The notes beneath the pieces were generated by a model, which worked only from the letters and a program-made list of their open reading frames with translations, was not told the origin of the DNA and searched no databases. 32,000 bases of DNA, taken from positions 30,001 to 62,000 of the forward strand of contig NW_008806280.1 of NCBI RefSeq assembly GCF_000400465.1. Direction: 5' to 3'. The translations under genes and the position numbers were made by a program. Shown here piece after piece: positions 2,830 through 25,236 of this stretch. This DNA is from Wallemia ichthyophaga EXF-994. Taxonomy: Eukaryota > Fungi > Basidiomycota. Positions within the stretch are counted from its first letter, which is position 1, and every line of letters begins with the position of its first letter.

Positions 2830-3987
2830 TCACTTTCTAAGGCTGTCGTAATTCCTAACAAACCAATCCACGCTCTCCTCCAAAGCCTTTTCAAATGGGG
2901 TGAATTGAAAGTTACCGATGCACCTCATCAGCTTGTCGTTAGACGCAGGCTTCCTATACTGTCCATCTGGTTTGCTGGTGTCAAGGACATACTCTCCTTG
3001 GAATCCAACAGCCTTAACGACAGCATCAGCCACCTCTTTTATACTCACCTCCTCATTCTCCCCTACAGAGAGAATGACAGGTTCGATAGAATGATACTCG
3101 CGCAGCTGCCATATGAATAGCCTAGCGAGATCCAACGAGTAGATAAACTGCCGTAACGGCTTACCCGAACCCATCACCACGAATGGCTTCTTCTCCTTGT
3201 TTGCGAGGTAGCACTTGTGTATCAGGGCGGGTATAACGTGCGCGTATTCCAAGCTGTAGTTGTCATTAGGACCAAAGATATTCGTTGGAATTGCCGATGT
3301 GAACTGATTACCGAACTGGTCGTTGTACGCGTGGTTCTGTACATCTATCATACGCTTACCATATGCATAACCAAAGTTAGATGAATGTGGTGGTCCTAGG
3401 TGCACGCTCTCCTCGCGCAGCGGATAGGATACTTGGTCAGGGAAGACGCAAGTGGACAGGCAAGATATAAGTTTGTGTACCTGTGAAGGCTATGTTGAGA
3501 CTTGTAGTTGTATATGTGCTGCAAGCCACCCACCTTAAATTCATGGCTCAAGTGGAGGACATTGTCGTTAATGAGCATGTTCTCGCGCAGGAAGTCTAAC
3601 TGTGAGCGTGCGTAAGTGTGATTTACACCGCCCCATACAATATCGTACCTTGTATTTCATGTTGGCGAACAGTCCACCGACTTTCGCAGCGAGGTGTATG
3701 ACGTGCGTCGGGGAGTATTTAGCGAATACCGCACGCGCTTCTGCGTAGTTGCTAAGTGTTCATCACGTGCGCCGTAAGCACTGTTCAGGTCATTCAACCC
3801 ACACTCACCGCAGATCGCCATCAGTCGATTTGAGGAAGACCCAGGATTCGTTCGGCTGTCTCCCAAATCTACTTCCAATAGCCTCCTCATTGATCACTTT
3901 GTTTATTGCACTCCCAACTAATCCTGTTCCACCCGTAACGAGTACGACAGATGTGTTCTCTTGGCCGCTGCTACTGCTGTTGGTCAT
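2830..3987 (-). CDS. GDP-L-fucose synthase (GDP-4-keto-6-deoxymannose epimerase/reductase, GMER/TSTA3 family); introns 3752..3808, 3600..3648, 3481..3533
   Basis: [11 protein letters not shown] Rossmann motif, [28 protein letters not shown], catalytic NFGYAYGKR (YxxxK), [25 protein letters not shown] and [12 protein letters not shown]. Three GT-AG introns join the ORF fragments in frame. Confidence 0.92.
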
Positions 3988-12987: not shown

Positions 12988-13689
12988 ATGGCCGCTATCT
13001 CAGATGATGAGCAGACGGAGAGCGAGCCACCGCCATACGCGGCTGTGACCGCGGCAGCGACGGCGCCGGCGTACACGAGACACAGAAACAGACAGCGGCA
13101 GCCTCAGCCAGCCACCGCCACCAGAAGCAGCACAAACACACCGATTTCACTCACACTCATCTATCAGCTACTCCAGCTAACGTCTCTTCTGCCCGCTCTC
13201 ACGGGCGTCCTCTACCTTCTCATTAGATTCTCGCTGCACACGCTCCCAGCTCCTAATCCTTCGCGCATCGAGTACCTCGCTTCAACCCCATGGGCGGTGC
13301 TTACGGCCGTTTACAGCTTCCAGATTATCAGCAGCATGCTACACAGGTGGAAGCAGTACTACCACCCCATTTCCGTCATTATCCGCCTCCTCTCGATACA
13401 GGCTGCGTCGTTTCCGTGGATCAGAGTCACCCTGTGGCTGTGCTCTACGCCTGAGAAACCCCTGCTGGCGTGGATGGTCGTCGCTATCACCACCGCCGTC
13501 TCCAGCTCCATCGCCCGGTGGTACATCAGCAATCTCAGCAGCACACAGTCTGCGCGTCATATCGATGTTGCTCGGCTGGTTACTAGGACCATTCTCCCCA
13601 TCTCCACGCTCTCCCTTTTCAGCCTCTTCCTGCTTCTTTACGATCTCTACTATACCAGAGTCTCGCTTCAAGTGGCAATGGCGCTTTAG
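12988..13689 (+). CDS. EOS1: EOS1-family ER membrane / N-glycosylation protein
   Basis: Pattern LLQLTSLLPA..RIEYLAS.WAVLTA..SF....LHRWKQYY.P..VIIRLLSIQA..PLLAW.VVAITT..WYISNL with several TM helices. Family recognised from memory. N-terminal PPPY motif. Confidence 0.7.
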   Translation: MAAISDDEQTESEPPPYAAVTAAATAPAYTRHRNRQRQPQPATATRSSTNTPISLTLIYQLLQLTSLLPALTGVLYLLIRFSLHTLPAPNPSRIEYLASTPWAVLTAVYSFQIISSMLHRWKQYYHPISVIIRLLSIQAASFPWIRVTLWLCSTPEKPLLAWMVVAITTAVSSSIARWYISNLSSTQSARHIDVARLVTRTILPISTLSLFSLFLLLYDLYYTRVSLQVAMAL

Positions 13690-13735
13690 CACTGGCAATG
13701 GCGCTTTAACACACTGGCAATGGCATTTACTACAC
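13673..13735 (+). repeat. Three imperfect tandem copies of a 20-22 bp unit (TGGCAATGGCGCTTTAGCAC) spanning the EOS1 stop codon
   Basis: tggcaatggcgctttagcac / tggcaatggcgctttaacacac / tggcaatggcatttactacac read directly from the sequence. Confidence 0.9.
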
Positions 13736-13834
13736 GAAAATCCTAATACACTAATCTTTATACTCACCTTTACTTCTCTACTCATACCTTTGCGTTCATA
13801 TGTCGTCTTTTTTTTTCACTCATGCATTCTCTAT

Positions 13835-16800
13835 TTATACATTGCTAAATAAACTACTGCGCACGCTGCCAACGAGATCCTTAAGCACGGCACTGCTCAC
13901 TGTCTTCTTCTTGGGCGACGGTGACGGCGACGGCGACCTCACCAACTCGTCCTCCCTCTTGCGCTGTCTGCTGGATTGTTCGTGAGCAACTCTGACGCCC
14001 TCGGCCATTCTTTCGAGCTGCAACACCACGCGACGCGTCCTCTTCACTATATCTGTCTGCTCCACCAGCTCTTCTTGGTTGAGGGATACCCCATCGCGCA
14101 CGACAAACGTTTCGTCTGCCGGGTGGCCAGAGAAGACTATGTCGAGTATGCGAGTCATCACATACACAGTATCGGCGTGGCTGCCATCCCACCCGGCTAT
14201 CTCTGCGCGCAAGAGGAGCACATCGGGCTCAAAGTCGAAGCGTTCGTCGTCGAGCCACTCAATCAGTGTGGTGGGGAGGGGGATGCTTGTGTGGGTCAGG
14301 GTGGTTCTCCAGATGTTAAAAGCGAATAGCTCTTACCTCTCTTTCACGTTCGCATTCAATTTCACACCCACACTCTCCTTGAGCAGAGGTAGTGTGCGTG
14401 TCTCCGTCGGCGCCTCATCGCCATCCGCACCCGCACACAGCATCTGCACCGCCTCGTTCGTTGCCCGTATCGCCTCGTTGAGTATCGCGATCGACGAGTC
14501 CACCAAGGCGATCGCTATGTGGTGCGCATAGGGCATGTGATGGATGGCAAGTACACTAGCCAACGCGACTGGCGAGAACACCGCCGATACACGCCTAGGT
14601 GTGGTTGTTTGGTAGTGTCGCACCCCCACATCCACACTCTCCAAGAGAGTGTGCAGTTGGGAATCGAACGAGTGCGGGGCGATCTGGAGGTATTTCAAAT
14701 GTAGTGCGGGTGTGTTCAAATTCGAGCTCAAGCACTGCAAAAACCAAGTGAGCTATGGTTTCACTCATCATGGTAGCTTCACTCACCTCGACAGCCTCGC
14801 TCTCACACCACGATAGCACCACGATAGTGGGTATAAAGGTGCCGTACGCTAAACGCCCCGCTACACGCTCCATCCTCCTTTTATCATTATTGAGTGTTCG
14901 CGCTCTCTCTTTTTCCGACTGCTGTCTCGCCAGCTCGCGCGAGCATTCAAAGAAAACAATAGCGGTAGAGGCGGGTGGCTGGAGTGCGAGTGCGAGTGTG
15001 AGTGTGAGTGTGGTTGTGAGTGTTAATCACCCCTTCAATCAGCTACTACCCACCTTCTCGCTATTCGCATACAACGAAAGCTGCGAGTTGGCTTGATTAA
15101 AGTCGCCAACATCTGCACCGAAACGCGTGCGCAGCCATGAGCTGGAGGAGGAAGAGTCGTCGTGGGTGTACAGCCCCACATCCACACTCGCAAAGTGTTT
15201 CAGGAGTGGGTTGCTGTGTATAAACCCAGCCACGACAGTCAACGCACCACCTCGATTCCACAACTCGCTTCTCTGCTGTACGTGCTGAAGAAGGGAACTC
15301 TCTGTCAGAGTTATCGACAAGATAAATAAGCCGCTCACCTGCTGCAACGTGTGCTCCATCTCTGAATCGCTCAGTCTGAGTCTGAGTTGATGGAGAGGTG
15401 AATGGTGAAAAGCCACCTCTTCATCCTCGTGATCGAAAAGCTCCTCTGCATCTTGTTTGTCTTCCTCATCCTCTTCATCCGGCAGGGTGAAAGCCGGGGT
15501 CGTGCCACCCCTCCCAAAGGAAAGACCCTCGACAGCCATTCTAAACTGCTTGAGACGCTCCTGGTCAACATCGCGCGCAATGACGCGTGCCACTGCAGCC
15601 GTCTTCCACAGACGCAGACAACGCAAAATCAGCCTGCGTCGCCTGTACATGGCTGCTACCTCTCGCAGCACGCACGACCGCACAGCCGCAGCCACCGTCT
15701 CGTCGAGAATGCGGTCGGTGAGTTTTGTGCATGTCGTGTGAGTGAGCTCGAGCCGTTCTCGTTCTCTACCTCGCTCTTCCTCCCTCGTTTTCTTGCGCTC
15801 CTCTTCTTCAGCTCGCAAACGCCCTTGTAGCTTGCGGTTTTCTGATAAACGCCTCCGCGATTGTGCTGCACGTGCTAATTGAGCTGCTTCCGTCGCTTCT
15901 GCCGCTTCTGCTGCTTTTTGTTTCTTCTGCCTCTCCCGCTCCTCTTGCTGCTGCTGGCGGTGTTTCTCGTCGAGGTCATTATCAGGTTGAACATCAGGTT
16001 GGGCACCTTGTCCTTGTCCCTGTGTGCTGGGTGGGGTGAATGCATTAGCAAACGCACCTGCAGTTTCAGTACCAGTGCCAGTGCCACTCCAGCTGAACGC
16101 GTTGGAAGACGGAGCGCCCTGTGTGTGCTGCGTAGTCTGTCTAGGTTGGAAGGAGAAGGCTGTTGCGATGGGTTTGGGAGGAGGGGGCATGAGGGAGGTC
16201 GGAGAGCTGTTAGAGTGATTGTGACTGCTAGTGCCCGTATCAGTACCCGCACTAGTTCCATAACCATAGCCTCCACCGCCACTGTCAATATTCGCATTTG
16301 TTTTGGTCGATGGCATTGTGAAAACTGGCGCAGATGGTCTAAGCGAGGACAAAGACGCTGGTTGGCTCTTTGGGATATCACCAGCCACAACATCGACACC
16401 GATATCAAAATCAATGGCTAGAGGGGTATCTATAACATCCCGCGCACTGAGCCTGCCTCTCTTGGCAGATACGAGACGAGACTTGCAGTGAGGGATAGTC
16501 GGACCCGAGTCGTTGACCTGCGACTGTTTGTTTACTCTAACGGCTGTGGGCGGGGCTTCGTCATTTCCATTATCATTATCTTTCTCATTCTCGCCGCCCC
16601 TCTCCACATCCAGCCCGAGGTTCTCCGCCTCGCGCGCGACATGCAAACCGTCGTCGCATCCGAGCACACTGACGAGGTCAGCGACGGGATAAGCGCGGTA
16701 TTTGCTCGGGTAAGCGACGCGCATAGCCTTGAGGGCGCCTCTGCGCACGCTGCTGAAGGAGGGTTCGAGAAGGCACGCCATAAGGAAAGGGGTGCTACTC

Positions 16801-17748
16801 GAGCGGATAAGTTTGAAGAAGCGCGAGTATCCATTAGGGCTAGACACCGTATTATGGGGGCGTCCTCGTACGTCAGCCTCGTTCGAGCGGCGGGCGAGAG
16901 CGTGAAATTTGAGTGCGAGTTGAATGGGCTGCGAGAGGTAGAGTGAGGTGGGGAGGCGTTCTGCAGCAGCAGCAGTGCTAGAGTCGCGCAGATGAATGAG
17001 GAGGTGGTAGGCTCTGAACTCTGCTTCGTTCGGGAGTGTTTCGCCCGTGCTGGCCCGCCAGTCGTCGTAGAACTCCGTCAAGCTCAGCAACACCTTGCTC
17101 AGCTGCTCCAGCTCCTGCTGGTCAGACCACCCAGTGCGCTCGCATAGCTCGTGCAGGCAGAGGATGTGGTAGCGGGCTATGCGCTCGTGGCACTCGACGG
17201 CAACGCGGTCGCGGATGTGCTGCAGAGTGAAATCCTGTCGTATAGAGCGCGTCCTGTCGCGAAGGAAGTGGTGGCTGTCGTGCAGGTCTGCGTCTTCTGC
17301 GAGGATCGTGTGGAAGAGATAGTCGAGTGTTTGCTTGAGCACCGGCGCTGGGCGTACATCTGACGGCAGGCTGGCTTCGTCGCCGGCAGCTGGCCTGTGG
17401 AATGTCTTCACGGTGCGCGCGGGATTCGCCTGGCGCGGGTGCTCTGCGTATACCTCCCACTTATCCAGATTGAGCTGGTACTCGCGCTCGACGCGTTCAA
17501 ACAGTGGACACATGGTGGTACACGTTCCTCGCAGCGTTATCGCATCGCTCAGACTCATTCCCCCTTGGCTCGGATCGGGGATTTGGCCATCTCTAATGGC
17601 TTCGAGTCGCTCGACTTCTCGGTGCGCGCGCAGCTGGGTAAGCGGGTCAGACGGGATTCGAACGCAGAGCCCTGCACACCTGCTGGTATTGCGTCTTGTC
17701 GGCGGTGAATCTGCTGCCTCTGTCGGTGGTGAGATGACCGTCAGCCAT
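13835..17748 (-). CDS. SAC3: Sac3/GANP (TREX-2 scaffold); introns 17634..17679, 15285..15338, 14979..15053, 14735..14786, 14286..14336
   Basis: RLEAIRDGQIPDP..LSDAITLRGTCTTMCPLFERVERE, KTFHRPAAG..LPSDVRPAPVL..TLDYL, FLRDRTRSIRQDFT.Q, ECHERIARYH, QELEQL.K.L.SL.EFY and NEAEFRAYHLL. Five GT-AG introns link four ORF-track fragments into one frame. Confidence 0.85.
14982..15023 (+). repeat. Hexamer microsatellite (GAGTGC/GAGTGT)n inside a SAC3 intron
   Basis: gagtgcgagtgcgagtgtgagtgtgagtgtggttgtgagtgt. It accounts for this intron being 75 nt rather than about 50 nt. Confidence 0.8.
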
Positions 17749-17758
17749 TAAGATAACA

Positions 17759-18378
17759 TCAACGACGTAAAAACCTCTTTATTGGCTCAAATACAAATAC
17801 ACTGAATCTTGGGCTGTAGTATAAGCAAGCGAGTATTCTAACTGGGAGAAGTACCTGTGATAGGTCGGGAGTGAGAATTTTCACCTTTTGTGACGACACA
17901 CACTAACCTTGGTTATCGTGTATGCTGCTATGGCTTCAGAGATGTGTGCTGTGTATCTGCCACTGCCGTCCCACTTGTTCTCCTCATCTTGCCAGAGATT
18001 GTAGCGCTGTCTGAATCTGTCGAGACGACGCTCACCCTCCTCGCAAGCAGCACGAGTCCAGCTTCTTATGTCATTGGTGTTATCGCAGCTATCTGCTCCC
18101 CACAACCACTCTAGACTACGCTCGCCTACGCCGAACCAGTGCAACCCCCCAAAGATAGCAATCACGGGAAAAATAGCTGTCAGCTCGTGGAGAATGGCGA
18201 ATGAGGCGCTGAGGCTGATTGGGTCTGTGCCTGTGCGTTGACTGAGGTGTTGCAGGCGTTGAGTGTAGGTGTGAGTGCTCTTGTGGCGTACTTGGTTTGA
18301 TTTCGGTACTCTGGGTGCTCTAAGTACTCGAGATAGTCCAGATACTCCAAATCCCCGGAATCCAGTCCAAATCAGCAT
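17759..18378 (-). CDS. MRX11: Mitochondrial FLILHELTA-family protein (Mrx11-like); intron 17855..17907
   Basis: Basic presequence-like N-terminus (MLIWTGFRGF..SRVLRAPRVPK), signature SFAILHELTAIFP, and the spliced C-terminus AYTITK|VLLPVRILACLYYSPRF...KRFLRR*. Confidence 0.8.
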
Positions 18379-20702: not shown

Positions 20703-21662
20703 CTACTTTACTTGTGCCCTTCTCTTTCCAATTTGCGCTTGGAATCCTGATTTGATTGCTGCAACTGATCTACGCGATCCACAAGACTCACATGTCATGA
20801 AGTAGAGTCTATTCTCCTTTGTTAGGTTAGTTTCTGGTGATTTGCATGTCTTGCAAGTGACATATTCAATGATATATCTTCTTAGCACATTCTCAATCTG
20901 CTTCTGTTGAAATCTACCTCTAATAACCAATCTTTGTGATCCATCGACGGAACCAGATGTACCCAACTCCGCAAATAGGAATTGTATCAAATGTTCTGGT
21001 TGTCTGTGCATCTTTTTACAGATATCTGCTATGTTAGCAAATGCTGTCTTCTTATTACCATCTTTAACAACCTGAGGTGGTGCAATGGTGTATCTCTTTG
21101 CACCGGTGACTAAGGCTGGGTTTTGAGAGTGAAGAAGTTTAAAAGTACGTGAAAGGAGTTCTTTGTACGTGTAGTCTCTTTCAGTACCCAACCAAGGTTC
21201 ACCATTGTCATTTGATGATTCTGAGAGTGGGTCTAAACCATTTCCAGCGGTATCACCAGCTGTTTCACCACTCTCACCTTGGATCTGGGCATTTGAAGAG
21301 CTTCCTTGGTCTAATTCCTTATCGAAAGCATCCAAATCAAAAGCTTTCTTCTTGCTGCTGCTCTTCTTTTTCTTTTTCAAGTCTGAGAATTCATCTGGTT
21401 GATCTTCTTCTTGAACTGGGGAATGCTCTGGCTGCTCAGATTTCTCAGATATCTCACCCTTTTCACTCTTATCAGACTTCTTTTTAGATTTCTTTTTTAA
21501 TCCAGAGAATAAATCTGATTCTTCTGCACCTTCTGGGGTGTCTGCTTGTCCAGCCTGAGCGTCTAAATCATCAAAATTTACAGCTTTCTTTTTCTTCTTC
21601 TTCAAAGCTGGATCAATTGAAAGATCTTGGTCTTGTTTGGTTGGAACGTGTGCGTCTGTCAT
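20703..21662 (-). CDS. SUI3: Translation initiation factor eIF2 beta
   Basis: Three poly-Lys boxes, [45 protein letters not shown] and the C2C2 finger [15 protein letters not shown]. Confidence 0.97.
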
Positions 21663-21846: not shown

Positions 21847-22749
21847 ATGCTTAGAGCGGCAACGACAATCAGACCAGCTTTAAAAACTTCAGTTCAGCCT
21901 GCAATGGCAGCGAGAACCTTCTCTTCCACCTCCCCTGCCGCTGAAACTCTCCGTGAAATTGAGCAACGTCTTAAATCCGTAAAGAACATTGAAAAGATCA
22001 CAAAGTCTATGAAAATGATTGCCTCTACAAAGCTCACAAAGGCTCAAAGGGCTATGAACACTGCCATTCAATACGGCAAGACTAACAGTGAAATATTCGA
22101 CCAATCACAAGTCCAAGCTCCTGAAAACGCAAAGTCTTTATGGATTGTTGTTTCCTCTGACTCTGGTTTGTGTGGTGGTATCCACTCCTCCGTTTCCAAG
22201 TACACAAAGCGTGGTATTATTGAGGAAGGTAGTGAAGAACACCCAATCGTTATCCTTGGTGACAGAGCACGTAACCAACTTCAGCGTTCAAACCCAAGCG
22301 ACGTCAAACTCTCTTTCAACCAAATTGGTAAACAAATTCCAACTTTCACTGACGCTGCTGCCATCGCAGACACTATCCTCACTTCAGACATTGAATTTGA
22401 TCAAGTAAACCTCGTCTACAACCAATACACTTCTCAAATTGGTTACGACGCTAACACCATCAAAGCCTACACTGAGAAAATTCTCAGTCAATCTCAAGGT
22501 TTCAAGTCTTATGAGCAAGAAGAGGAGGCAACCAAAGACCTCGCTCAATTCTCATTCGCCAACGCTATCTACGCTGCACTCGTTGAAGGTCACGCCTCTG
22601 AAATCAACGCCCGTAGAAACGCAATGGACAACGCCTCAAAGAACGCAGGTGAAATGATCAACAACCTCAACCTCAAGTACAACCGTGGTCGTCAAGCCCA
22701 AATCACCAACGAGCTTATCGAAGTTATCACTGGTGCTTCTTCACTTTAG
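21847..22749 (+). CDS. ATP3: Mitochondrial ATP synthase F1 gamma subunit
   Basis: Presequence MLRAATTIRPA..RTFS, TLREIEQRLKSVKNIEKITKSMKMIASTKL, SSDSGLCGGIHS and ARRNAMDNASKNA..YNRGRQAQITNELIEVITGA. Confidence 0.97.
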   Translation: MLRAATTIRPALKTSVQPAMAARTFSSTSPAAETLREIEQRLKSVKNIEKITKSMKMIASTKLTKAQRAMNTAIQYGKTNSEIFDQSQVQAPENAKSLWIVVSSDSGLCGGIHSSVSKYTKRGIIEEGSEEHPIVILGDRARNQLQRSNPSDVKLSFNQIGKQIPTFTDAAAIADTILTSDIEFDQVNLVYNQYTSQIGYDANTIKAYTEKILSQSQGFKSYEQEEEATKDLAQFSFANAIYAALVEGHASEINARRNAMDNASKNAGEMINNLNLKYNRGRQAQITNELIEVITGASSL

Positions 22750-22983
22750 ACTTGATCACTTTATAGTACTTGTAGAGCGTGTCTATCTAAAATATCTTTC
22801 TTCAAATGAATTTAAACTAAATTTCAAATTAAATGGGATTGATTGAAAATTGGCATTTCATTGGCATAACCACGCTGTCTTCCCTCTTACCCACCCAAAT
22901 ACAAAATTCTTATACGCACAGCGTTACGAGCAGCGAGCATAAGAAGAAGAATTTCAATACCACCAATTAGATTTATAGGCAGA

Positions 22984-25236
22984 ATGAATCACCCAGAGCA
23001 ATCCAATAACTTGGAAGCACAAGTGCAAGCGCAACCACAGCCACAAGCAAACACCCAAAAACAATCTAAAAAGGATAAAAAGGCTTCAAATACCTCAAAG
23101 AATCCTATTGAAATGACCCCTCCTCCTGCTTACCTCAAAGAGCGTCTCGATATCTGGGACAGGCTTAAAGAAGCTGCAGACGCTGAATTAGCTTCAAAGC
23201 CAAGAGGCCCTATCACTATTACTCTTCCAGATGGCAAGCAGCAGCAAGGAACTTCATATGAAACAACTCCAATGGAACTCGTTAAAGCTATTGCTTCCTC
23301 ACTTGCAGATAGAACCGTTATTTCTAAGGTGAACGGTGCTCTCTGGGATCTAGAAAGACCTTTCGAACAAGACAGCAACGTTGAATTTTTAGATTTCAAC
23401 ACAGAGGAAGGTCAACAAGTTTTCTGGCACTCCTCAGCTCACGTTCTCGGTGAGGCTTGTGAGAGGCACTATGGCAGTCACTTAGCTGTCGGTCCTCCAA
23501 CTGACGACGGTTTCTTCTACGAAATGGCCATCCAAGACCGTATGGTGTATCAGGAGGACTACCAGCCACTTGAGCAAATTGCAAATAGCGCAATCAAGGA
23601 GAAACAGCCATTTGAAAGACTTATGGTATCTAAGGAGAAGCTCTTGGAGTTGTTTGCTTACAACAAGTACAAGCAGTACATCATCTCTTCAAAAATCCCT
23701 GACGGCACCTCCACTACCGTCTACAGATGCGGTCCAATGATCGATTTGTGTAGAGGTCCACACATCCCCCACACTGGAAAGATCAAAGCTTTCAATGTCA
23801 ACAAGCACTCTGCGTCTTACTTCCTCGGTGATGCTAAGAATGACTCGTTGCAGCGTGTCTATGGTATCGCCTTCCCTGACAAAAAGCAGATGGTTGAATA
23901 CAAGCACTTTATAGCTGAAGCTTCAAAGCGTGACCACAGAAAGATTGGCAAAGAACAAGAACTTTTCTTCTTCCATGAACTATCTCCAGGTAGTTGCTTC
24001 TTCTTGCCAAATGGTACGAGAATCTACAACACCCTGCTCGACTTTTTGAAAAAGGAGTACCATGCGCGCGGATACCAAGAAGTTATCACCCCCAACATGT
24101 TCAACACCAAGGTTTGGGAGACTTCCGGTCACTGGCAGAACTATGCCGAAAACATGTTTTCATTAGACATTGAAAAGGAGAAGTTCGCATTGAAGCCTAT
24201 GAACTGTCCAGGTCATTGTTTATTATTCGACATGCGCGACCGTTCTTACAAAGAACTACCGTTCCGCGTTGCGGACTTTGGTGTCCTCCACCGCAACGAG
24301 GCGTCTGGCGCGTTGACTGGGTTGACTAGGGTGAGAAGATTCCAGCAAGACGATGCGCATATATTCTGTCGCAAGGATCAAATAGAGAATGAGTTCTCCG
24401 ATCTGTTCGATTTCCTCGAGAAAGTCTATGGGATTTGTGGGTTCGACTTCAAGTTGAAATTGTCCACTAGACCCGAGAAGTATCTCGGTAAGGTAGAGGA
24501 CTGGGATCAGGCCGAAAAGAACCTCTCCAACGCACTTGAGAAGTTTGTACCTGGTAAATGGGAACTCAACCCTGGCGATGGAGCATTCTACGGTCCAAAG
24601 ATCGATATTACGATCAGTGATGCACTCAGACGTAACCACCAGTGTGCTACTATCCAACTAGACTTCCAACTCCCAGAGAGATTCAAGCTGCGGTACCGCA
24701 CCGGCAACGACGAAGACTTTATCCAGAACGATGATGGGTCTATTGAGAAGGGCTTTGACAGACCGGTTATTATCCACAGGGCTATTCTCGGCTCGCTAGA
24801 GCGTTTCATAGCGATTGTCACTGAACACTTTGGCGGCAAGTGGTGAGTTGTTGACGGCGTGATGGTGTTCACTACCTCTAACAGTTCCAACAGGCCATTC
24901 TGGCTGTCGCCAAGACAAGCCATCATTATCCCCGTTGCGCACAAGTACGACGACTACGCTCATTCCCTCCAGAAACAGCTGTGGGATAATGAAATTATTT
25001 CCGAGGTGGATGCTGGAGAGAACACGCTGCCCAAGAAGATACGTAATGCTGAAATGGCTCAGCATAACTTCATTTTCGTCGTAGGTCAGGAGGAGGTAGA
25101 CGGCAAGTCGGTCAACGTTCGCAATCGCGATGATGCTGGCTCTAAAGCTAAAACTCCTACTGTGCCTTTCGCCGAGGTGCTCCAGCAGATGGTGCGTCTT
25201 AAGGATGAGAAAAGACTTGAGAATAGGTTGTTTTAG
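22984..25236 (+). CDS. THS1: Threonyl-tRNA synthetase (cytosolic type, TGS + editing + catalytic + anticodon domains); intron 24843..24893
   Basis: [83 protein letters not shown] and [17 protein letters not shown]|WPFWLSPRQ. Confidence 0.97.

Follow-up and report, generated by a model that had tools for sequence, protein, structure and literature searches.

An AUG-less, arginine-rich extension ahead of the Wallemia threonyl-tRNA synthetase and its probable initiation at AUU

Fungi already offer well-documented cases of near-cognate start codons for mitochondrial isoforms of aminoacyl-tRNA synthetases (aaRS), among them the use of AUU by a basidiomycete. Eleven aaRS of Cryptococcus are encoded by single-copy genes (Wallace et al. 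2020, PMC7049704). The threonyl-tRNA synthetase of Cryptococcus neoformans/deneoformans (ThrRS; CNAG_06755 / CNB00480) is a single-copy gene of the DualAUG type (MLRRLIPHAARF...RT followed by MSAEAHP) and one of nine aaRS that combine an AUG in weak context, a predicted mitochondrial presequence and a second AUG in strong context (MLRRLIPHAARFSHRTPTRYTYPLLQAVRT directly before MSAEAHP); the mitochondrial ArgRS (CNAG_03457) starts at AUU, and LeuRS (CNAG_06123) at ACG/AUU (PMC7049704). Ribosome occupancy in Cryptococcus begins at the first start codon, in some of the dual aaRS genes alternative start sites come on top of the choice of start codon, and the authors' conclusion is that fungi have repeatedly swapped weak AUGs and near-cognate codons (PMC7049704). 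ALA1 (ACG) and GRS1 (UUG) of Saccharomyces cerevisiae encode non-AUG mitochondrial isoforms (as cited in PMC7049704 and PMC3245939), and the mitochondrial and cytosolic forms of ThrRS and ValRS of Arabidopsis thaliana each begin at one of two AUGs in the same frame (Souciet et al. 1999, as cited in PMC3105428). Mitochondrial ThrRS enzymes of the ascomycete MST1 type are products of separate genes (S. cerevisiae YKL194C, Candida albicans C1_02930C_A and Neurospora crassa NCU03129) and have no TGS/editing N-terminal domains (PMC7049704). Here, we analyzed the ThrRS gene in a 32,000-nt stretch of DNA from Wallemia ichthyophaga EXF-994 (contig NW_008806280.1 of assembly GCF_000400465.1, positions 30,001-62,000, forward strand; hereafter the window), whose reading frame extends upstream of the start codon in the annotation. 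Our literature search returned nothing on Wallemia aaRS, nothing reporting a non-AUG ThrRS isoform and, for a basidiomycete MST1, nothing relevant.

In W. ichthyophaga, the frame 5' of the annotated start codon, ATG 22984, stays open back to an in-frame TAA at 22867-22869 and contains no ATG in between. Comparison across the genus suggests that a single Wallemia gene probably makes both the cytosolic and the mitochondrial ThrRS, the latter through a leaky start at AUU 22906. The features of the gene and its leader, in window coordinates, are as follows.

22902..22909, + strand: initiation context CAAA-ATT-C of the proposed near-cognate AUU start (ATT 22906-22908, A at -3 at 22903), invariant in six lineages
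22906..22983, + strand: AUG-less N-terminal extension of 26 codons, proposed mitochondrial presequence (open frame, presequence chemistry, in-frame conservation)
22984..22986, + strand: annotated AUG, start of the cytosolic isoform (MNHPEQ...), context ggcagaATGa, start of all public Wallemia models
22984..24842, + strand: ThrRS exon 1, with a Q/K-rich N-terminal tail, TGS, editing domain (tRNA_SAD) and class II core (Pfam scan)
24843..24893, + strand: ThrRS intron, 51 nt (GTGAGT ... CTAAC ... AG), whose removal restores reading across the junction
24894..25236, + strand: ThrRS exon 2, anticodon-binding domain (HGTP_anticodon PF03129 on the downstream open reading frame), stop TAG 25234-25236
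22876..22897, + strand: pyrimidine-rich tract ctgtcttccctcttacccaccc just 5' of the ATT; W. hederae and W. mellicola have comparable C/T-rich tracts ahead of the ATT
22833..22970, + strand: upstream open reading frame (uORF) of 45 codons, out of frame with ThrRS (frame 1, MGLIENWHF...), from ATG 22833 to TAG 22968-22970, overlapping the extension, 84 nt past the ATP3 stop
22806-22820, + strand: short uORF of four codons, ATG 22806, between the ATP3 stop and the ATT

The open reading frame at 22984-24846 (+ strand) reads into the intron; once 22984-24842 and 24894-25236 are spliced together, the product is a 733-aa protein identical to the annotated ThrRS (P0122 / EOR01350.1), with TGS at residues 77-136 and tRNA_SAD at residues 245-293. 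Among its best 120 homologues, full-length identity to the ThrRS of other Basidiomycota and of Mucoromycota/Glomeromycota is 63-68%, and the gene is a full-length eukaryote-type ThrRS, an orthologue of the cytosolic THS1-type enzymes. Within the protein collection, none of the copies of the spliced 733-aa ThrRS was Logan-derived (possibly from transcripts).

Read from ATT 22906 (tacaaaATTc), the extension contains seven Arg and neither Asp nor Glu in its 26 codons; the sequence after AUG 22984 is Gln-rich and slightly acidic. A preliminary description of this DNA had pointed out the open, ATG-free frame, the ATT with A at -3 and the composition of the extension, and all of these coordinates and counts were confirmed. 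Stop-free 26-codon segments with at least seven basic and no acidic residues make up 1.7% when all six frames of the window are considered. In random sequence of local composition, an open, acid-free frame with at least four basic residues appears in ~2% of trials for W. ichthyophaga and in 0.7% at the composition of its most distant relative (L008, see below). The corresponding upstream-frame statistics for other open reading frames of the window are of limited use, since several of their ATGs are not true gene starts. Taken alone, the extension is uncommon, not extraordinary; chance alone would be a poor explanation, given that the arrangement recurs in six lineages.

The loci compared were taken from the 90%-identity cluster of the exon-1 product, which includes ThrRS of W. 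mellicola, W. hederae and Wallemia-like genomes as well as metagenome bins. They fall into six lineages: W. ichthyophaga (the window, L001 and L002), W. hederae (L007), W. mellicola (L003-L006), L012, L013 and L008-L011. Common to all of them is the gene order eIF2beta/eIF5-domain gene, ATP3 (ATP synthase gamma), ThrRS and MFS transporter, and the MNHPEQ start is kept in five lineages. An in-frame ATT within CA(A/C)A-ATT-C is found in all six, 78, 78, 78, 90, 90 and 102 nt before the AUG in W. ichthyophaga, L007, L012, L006, L013 and L008, respectively, all of these distances being multiples of three. The resulting extensions of 26-34 codons are free of stops and of ATG between ATT and AUG in every lineage, and the remaining two frames over the same region have stops in nearly every lineage. 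Besides that of W. ichthyophaga, the extension peptides are, as listed, ILIRTAFRAASVTRGFYIPVNRVFST, ILIRTAFRAASVRRGFSIPARRFIST, ILIRTSLQAARVRRAFPIPRIRFIRTTPLN, ILIRTSLQAARVRRAFPIPHIRFIRTTPLS and IQSLSRLLPRRIRIPNRFINFNNFYLNTLSFRTI; each of the six has 4-7 Arg and no acidic residue. In the MAFFT alignment of the six lineages, C22902, A22903, A22905, A22906, T22907, T22908 and C22909 are invariant, and the ATT is both the sole near-cognate codon invariant in all lineages and the sole one with A at -3. Five of the six lineages have no upstream in-frame ATG, the feature of the Cryptococcus dual-AUG genes, anywhere from the in-frame stop to the annotated AUG.

Several of these lineages deserve separate description. 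The other W. ichthyophaga assemblies (L001 and L002) carry 18 differences from the window among 1860 exon-1 positions and none among the 78 positions of the extension; in both, the middle base (22868) of the in-frame TAA at 22867 is changed and the codon remains a stop. The Wallemia-like L008-L011 lineage, very AT-rich with an intergenic GC content of 19%, shares the gene order and is represented by at least 24 metagenome or run assemblies (ENA/Logan). In L008, the ThrRS start at 3418 opens a different cytosolic N-terminus (MSQPQEQPQQQP...) and is preceded by an AUG-less extension of 34 codons. In L013, the gene caller used an in-frame ATG that precedes the annotated AUG by 70 codons (2743-2952; 398-aa product). 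The peptide read from it (MSIDIYKKPDSLYLNT...) has acidic residues, and the ATG is missing in the close relative W. mellicola and in the other lineages, so that it would seem probably fortuitous. Metagenome contigs were also scanned with the conserved 17-mer AAAATTCTNATACGCAC; none of the 119 loci matched was followed by a ThrRS start, and all of them are chance matches.

The ATT coincides with a boundary of conservation. Gapped global identity over the 78 nt before the AUG proved uninformative (unrelated DNA also reaches 0.45-0.6), and an ungapped comparison anchored on the ATT was used instead. Among divergent Wallemia lineages, identity is 0.26-0.39, the random level, in the 66 nt upstream of the ATT, versus 0.67-0.82 in the 66 nt from the ATT onward. 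Synonymous sites of the main ThrRS coding sequence are saturated (dS 1.1-2.7); therefore, unconstrained DNA should not align, and upstream of the ATT it does not. Within the extension, codon 2 is CTT, CTG or CTA (all Leu), codon 14 is AGA or CGA (Arg), codon 12 is ATA, GTG, GTT or GTA (Ile/Val) and codon 16 is ATT, TTC or TTT (Ile/Phe), and the minimum numbers of changes at codon positions 1, 2 and 3 are 7, 9 and 17. Length differences of 12 nt and 24 nt preserve the frame. Pairwise dN/dS of the extension is 0.24-0.6, versus 0.02-0.05 for the mature enzyme, which would represent relaxed but real constraint, as expected of a targeting peptide. In L008, nucleotide similarity is lost (0.29-0.39), yet an open frame of 34 codons with six Arg, no acidic residue and the same ATT context is present, and this lineage may be regarded as an almost independent replicate. 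On these comparative data, the extension appears to evolve like a translated sequence in all six lineages, beginning with the ATT; this argument for coding rests on the combination of position bias, frame-preserving indels, absence of stops and constant physical chemistry.

The presequence character of the extensions was assessed physico-chemically, with Met set at position 1 and the maximum 11-residue hydrophobic moment as the measure of amphipathicity. All six have a net charge of +4 to +7, 41-50% hydrophobic residues and a maximum hydrophobic moment of 0.61-0.75 (0.65 in W. ichthyophaga). The classical presequence of ATP3 scores similarly (charge +4, moment 0.63), as do 11 AUG-initiated ThrRS N-termini of basidiomycetes (charge +5 to +9, moment 0.43-0.78), versus a charge of -1 and a moment of 0.24 for the cytosolic N-terminus after AUG 22984. 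By these measures, the physical chemistry of the extension is like that of mitochondrial presequences in all six lineages, in keeping with the earlier suggestion that it resembles a mitochondrial targeting peptide and is unlike the acidic, Gln-rich sequence after the AUG.

ThrRS genes of other basidiomycetes show what may have preceded the Wallemia arrangement. Among the best 120 homologues, a subset of ThrRS models carries 30-45 additional N-terminal residues, with an Arg-rich, acid-free segment that ends at a second Met, where the shorter models start. Many basidiomycete models, those of many Agaricomycetes included, begin ML..R.., 22-41 residues ahead of a second Met; examples of the long models are MLGLRLCRRPLPLPRCLSYRNRIAHRVPATTRALA before MTTPVASS, MLLRPLRWQQSLRYLRRSFHPS before MAQPLSS and MQRLLLRSTAVFHRPV... 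before MSSSAPHP (Microbotryum). Genomic DNA was checked for four species with short-start models, namely of Coprinopsis, Rhodotorula, Pseudozyma and Malassezia. In Coprinopsis cinerea (L014, ~899-1000), an in-frame ATG missing from the annotation lies 34 codons upstream and opens an Arg-rich presequence, MLILRFARR... (MLILRFARRSWIPPSSL..., MLILRFARRSWIPP...), and Rhodotorula toruloides (L017, ~878-1000) has one 41 codons upstream, MLTRTLHPR... (MLTRTLHPRVLSPVLARPARAR..., MLTRTLHPRVLSPV...); the public ThrRS models of both begin at the second AUG and omit the presequence. In Pseudozyma hubeiensis (L015) and Malassezia japonica (L016), both Ustilaginomycotina, an in-frame stop lies 7-9 codons upstream of the AUG (position 1001) and no presequence-like extension was found; judging from these loci, the two must supply their mitochondrial ThrRS otherwise, by a separate gene or an upstream exon. 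A ThrRS gene with two predicted starts is present in both Agaricomycotina and Pucciniomycotina. The I-L-I-R-T... of Wallemia aligns with the M-L-x-R... beginnings of these presequences, the Met column arising by construction, as the first Wallemia residue was entered as M. Judged by alignment, the Wallemia extension occupies the position of the AUG-initiated presequences of other basidiomycetes.

Together, these data make it probable that a single Wallemia gene provides both the cytosolic and the mitochondrial enzyme through a leaky start at AUU 22906. Scanning ribosomes would first meet this AUU in the strong context CAAA-AUU-C with A at -3, and a minority would initiate there with initiator Met-tRNA, adding an amphipathic, Arg-rich, acid-free presequence of 26 residues that would direct import into mitochondria and would probably be removed there. 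The majority would pass over it and start at AUG 22984 (context agaAUGa), giving the cytosolic enzyme. In evolutionary terms, the ancestral basidiomycete ThrRS gene would have had two in-frame AUGs flanking the presequence, of which the first became AUU in the Wallemia lineage by a single third-position change, the strong context being kept; the direction of this change is readable because the ancestral dual-AUG state persists in sister lineages. We infer that AUU is the codon used, that transcripts include it, that the product enters mitochondria and that there is no dedicated gene for a mitochondrial ThrRS, the last with indirect support from the single ThrRS gene of Cryptococcus (PMC7049704). 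The dual-targeting interpretation of the preliminary description is supported by every sequence-based test, including its expectation that the open, Arg-rich frame would be conserved in relatives (six of six lineages, from the ATT on). It was also right that standard annotation would miss such an isoform, all public Wallemia models starting at MNHPEQ, and what it had said of the near-cognate starts of S. cerevisiae GRS1 (UUG) and ALA1 (ACG) and of the separate MST1 agrees with the literature as cited in PMC7049704 and PMC3245939.

Several observations weigh against this reading. The third-position excess in the extension is marginal on 22 codons (chi-square p = 0.08). The dS of the extension, 0.3-1.1, is two- to four-fold below that of the main coding sequence, and because of this difference part of the conservation may act on nucleotides rather than on the peptide. 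AUU is usually among the weaker near-cognate codons. With the ATP3 stop no more than 156 nt ahead of the ATT, the ThrRS leader has to be short, and transcription might conceivably begin downstream of 22906; the pyrimidine tract at 22876-22897 is possibly a core promoter or transcription start region. If transcripts start farther upstream, the ATG at 22833, whose uORF is not kept in position in the other species compared, would compete with the AUU. The ATGs at 22806 and 22833 may belong to the 3' untranslated region of ATP3 instead of the ThrRS mRNA; if present in the latter, both uORFs would affect the use of AUU and AUG.

An unlikely alternative is that the extension is translated and serves targeting, but begins at a different near-cognate codon, either the AUA that is codon 3 or the CUG that some species have as codon 2, or that the two isoforms come mainly from two transcription start sites flanking the AUU. 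Codon 3 is ATA in all of five lineages, three lineages have CTG as codon 2, alternative start sites supplement start-codon choice in some Cryptococcus dual aaRS genes (PMC7049704), and the 156-nt intergenic distance makes heterogeneous start sites near the ATT plausible. However, only the ATT is invariant in all six lineages and only it has A at -3; W. ichthyophaga has CTT at codon 2, and L008 has CAG there and TCA at codon 3. Moreover, conservation starts four bases before the ATT, as expected of a start context.

It is quite improbable that the conserved 78 nt act as an untranslated element of the 5' leader, an RNA structure or protein-binding site regulating ThrRS translation, with the open frame incidental. 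This explanation would account for the near invariance of the first six codons at the nucleotide level and for the low dS of the extension relative to the main coding sequence. In W. ichthyophaga, a hairpin at 22907-22945, which begins at the second base of the ATT (outer stem UUCUUAU...AUAAGAA, inner stem CGC/GCG), also folds better than shuffled sequences, as scored on the 100-nt segment 22896-22995, which contains this hairpin and a second, smaller one around the AUG (-13 kcal/mol, z = -2.5). Yet the RNAalifold consensus across five species is weak (-3.2 kcal/mol) and without compensatory changes. Nor would a leader element be expected to show what the extension shows, namely indels in multiples of three, no in-frame stop in any of the six lineages and substitutions that often leave the amino acid unchanged or replace it conservatively (Leu CTT/CTG/CTA, Arg AGA/CGA, Ile/Val, Ile/Phe), or to leave L008, where nucleotide similarity is gone, with an open, acid-free frame, six Arg and the ATT context. 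The Rfam scan gave no match in 22600-23200. The hairpin at 22907-22945 was also considered as a conserved element in its own right and set aside as unsupported, with no covariation in five species.

Very improbable is a decaying, untranslated relic of an AUG-initiated presequence in a genus that would have a separate mitochondrial ThrRS. The upstream AUG of other basidiomycetes is indeed missing in Wallemia, and the Ustilaginomycotina genes without extension indicate that the dual arrangement can be lost. Synonymous sites are saturated across the six lineages, however, and the intergenic DNA that flanks the extension cannot be aligned; over such distances a relic would not have stayed open, in frame, free of acidic residues and rich in Arg, a state for which the chance expectation is ~1-2% per lineage. 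Finally, an upstream ATG exon spliced onto this frame, with a normal AUG start, is hardly credible even though basidiomycete genes are intron-rich and L013 has its in-frame ATG 70 codons upstream: this possibility, already raised in the preliminary description, is excluded in W. ichthyophaga because the stretch from TAA 22867-22869 to the ATT has no AG acceptor and synonymous turnover, as in coding sequence, is seen as early as codon 2, only 117 nt separate the ATP3 stop from TAA 22867, and the L013 ATG is absent in W. mellicola and all other lineages and adds a peptide with acidic residues.

The proposed AUU start, its four-base context and the next five codons are almost frozen in nucleotides across Wallemia. 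As a speculation to which we give little weight, this extra nucleotide constraint might reflect a device, dependent on RNA or initiation factors, that sets and perhaps tunes the ratio of mitochondrial to cytosolic ThrRS. If so, partitioning of the enzyme would be regulated and not the result of a passive leaky start, and for fungi that are xerophilic and halophilic, as these are, salt or water stress might be the cue.

The genes that precede ThrRS in the window are the following.

21847-22749, + strand: mitochondrial ATP synthase gamma (ATP3), directly upstream of ThrRS on the same strand, with a classical AUG presequence (MLRAATTIRPALK...)
20703-21662, - strand: gene with an eIF-5_eIF-2B domain, probably eIF2 beta, identified by the domain alone

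The spacer from the ATP3 stop to the ThrRS AUG is 234 nt in W. ichthyophaga versus ~1.5 kb in W. mellicola. Elsewhere in the window, a GC-rich block at 13000-18000 (54-56%, versus 40-48% in the rest) covers a SAC3/GANP-family gene at 15039-17558 (- strand).

If the extension is used as proposed, the model of this essential enzyme needs correction in every public Wallemia annotation; models that start at MNHPEQ imply a genome that, short of a second gene, has no means of charging mitochondrial tRNA-Thr. Coprinopsis and Rhodotorula illustrate that annotation pipelines miss mitochondrial isoforms even where an upstream AUG is available. The biology is expected and will be unsurprising to specialists; the case is useful for annotation and offers a clean evolutionary example. 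Apparently, it is the first ThrRS instance of the AUG-to-near-cognate swap inferred by Wallace et al. (2020) for other synthetases, and the first ThrRS case of a DualNCC aaRS.

Compared with known systems, the Wallemia gene is closest to the Cryptococcus ThrRS, an orthologous eukaryote-type enzyme in which a presequence of ~30 residues, Arg-rich and acid-free (MLRRLIPHAARFSHRTPTRYTYPLLQAVRT), lies directly 5' of the cytosolic Met and for which dual localisation by leaky scanning was likewise proposed. The Cryptococcus gene uses an AUG in weak context (U at -3), whereas Wallemia has an AUU in strong context (A at -3) and no upstream AUG. In this respect it is like the Cryptococcus ArgRS and LeuRS genes (DualNCC), in which a near-cognate start, including an AUU in otherwise strong context (cccaccAUU), stands before the predicted presequence of a single-copy aaRS; those are other synthetases and are backed by ribosome profiling and start-site mapping, whereas the Wallemia case is known from comparative sequence. 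With ALA1 and GRS1 of S. cerevisiae it would share a non-AUG presequence isoform on an mRNA that also yields the AUG-started cytosolic enzyme, but the enzymes and the near-cognate codons are different, and the mitochondrial ThrRS of yeast is the separate MST1. An MST1-type ThrRS would supply the same activity, the charging of mitochondrial tRNA-Thr; unlike such enzymes, which have their own AUG-started presequence and neither TGS nor editing domain, the Wallemia gene has both domains. As in the Arabidopsis ThrRS, one gene would serve two compartments through alternative in-frame initiation, but in the plant both starts are AUG.

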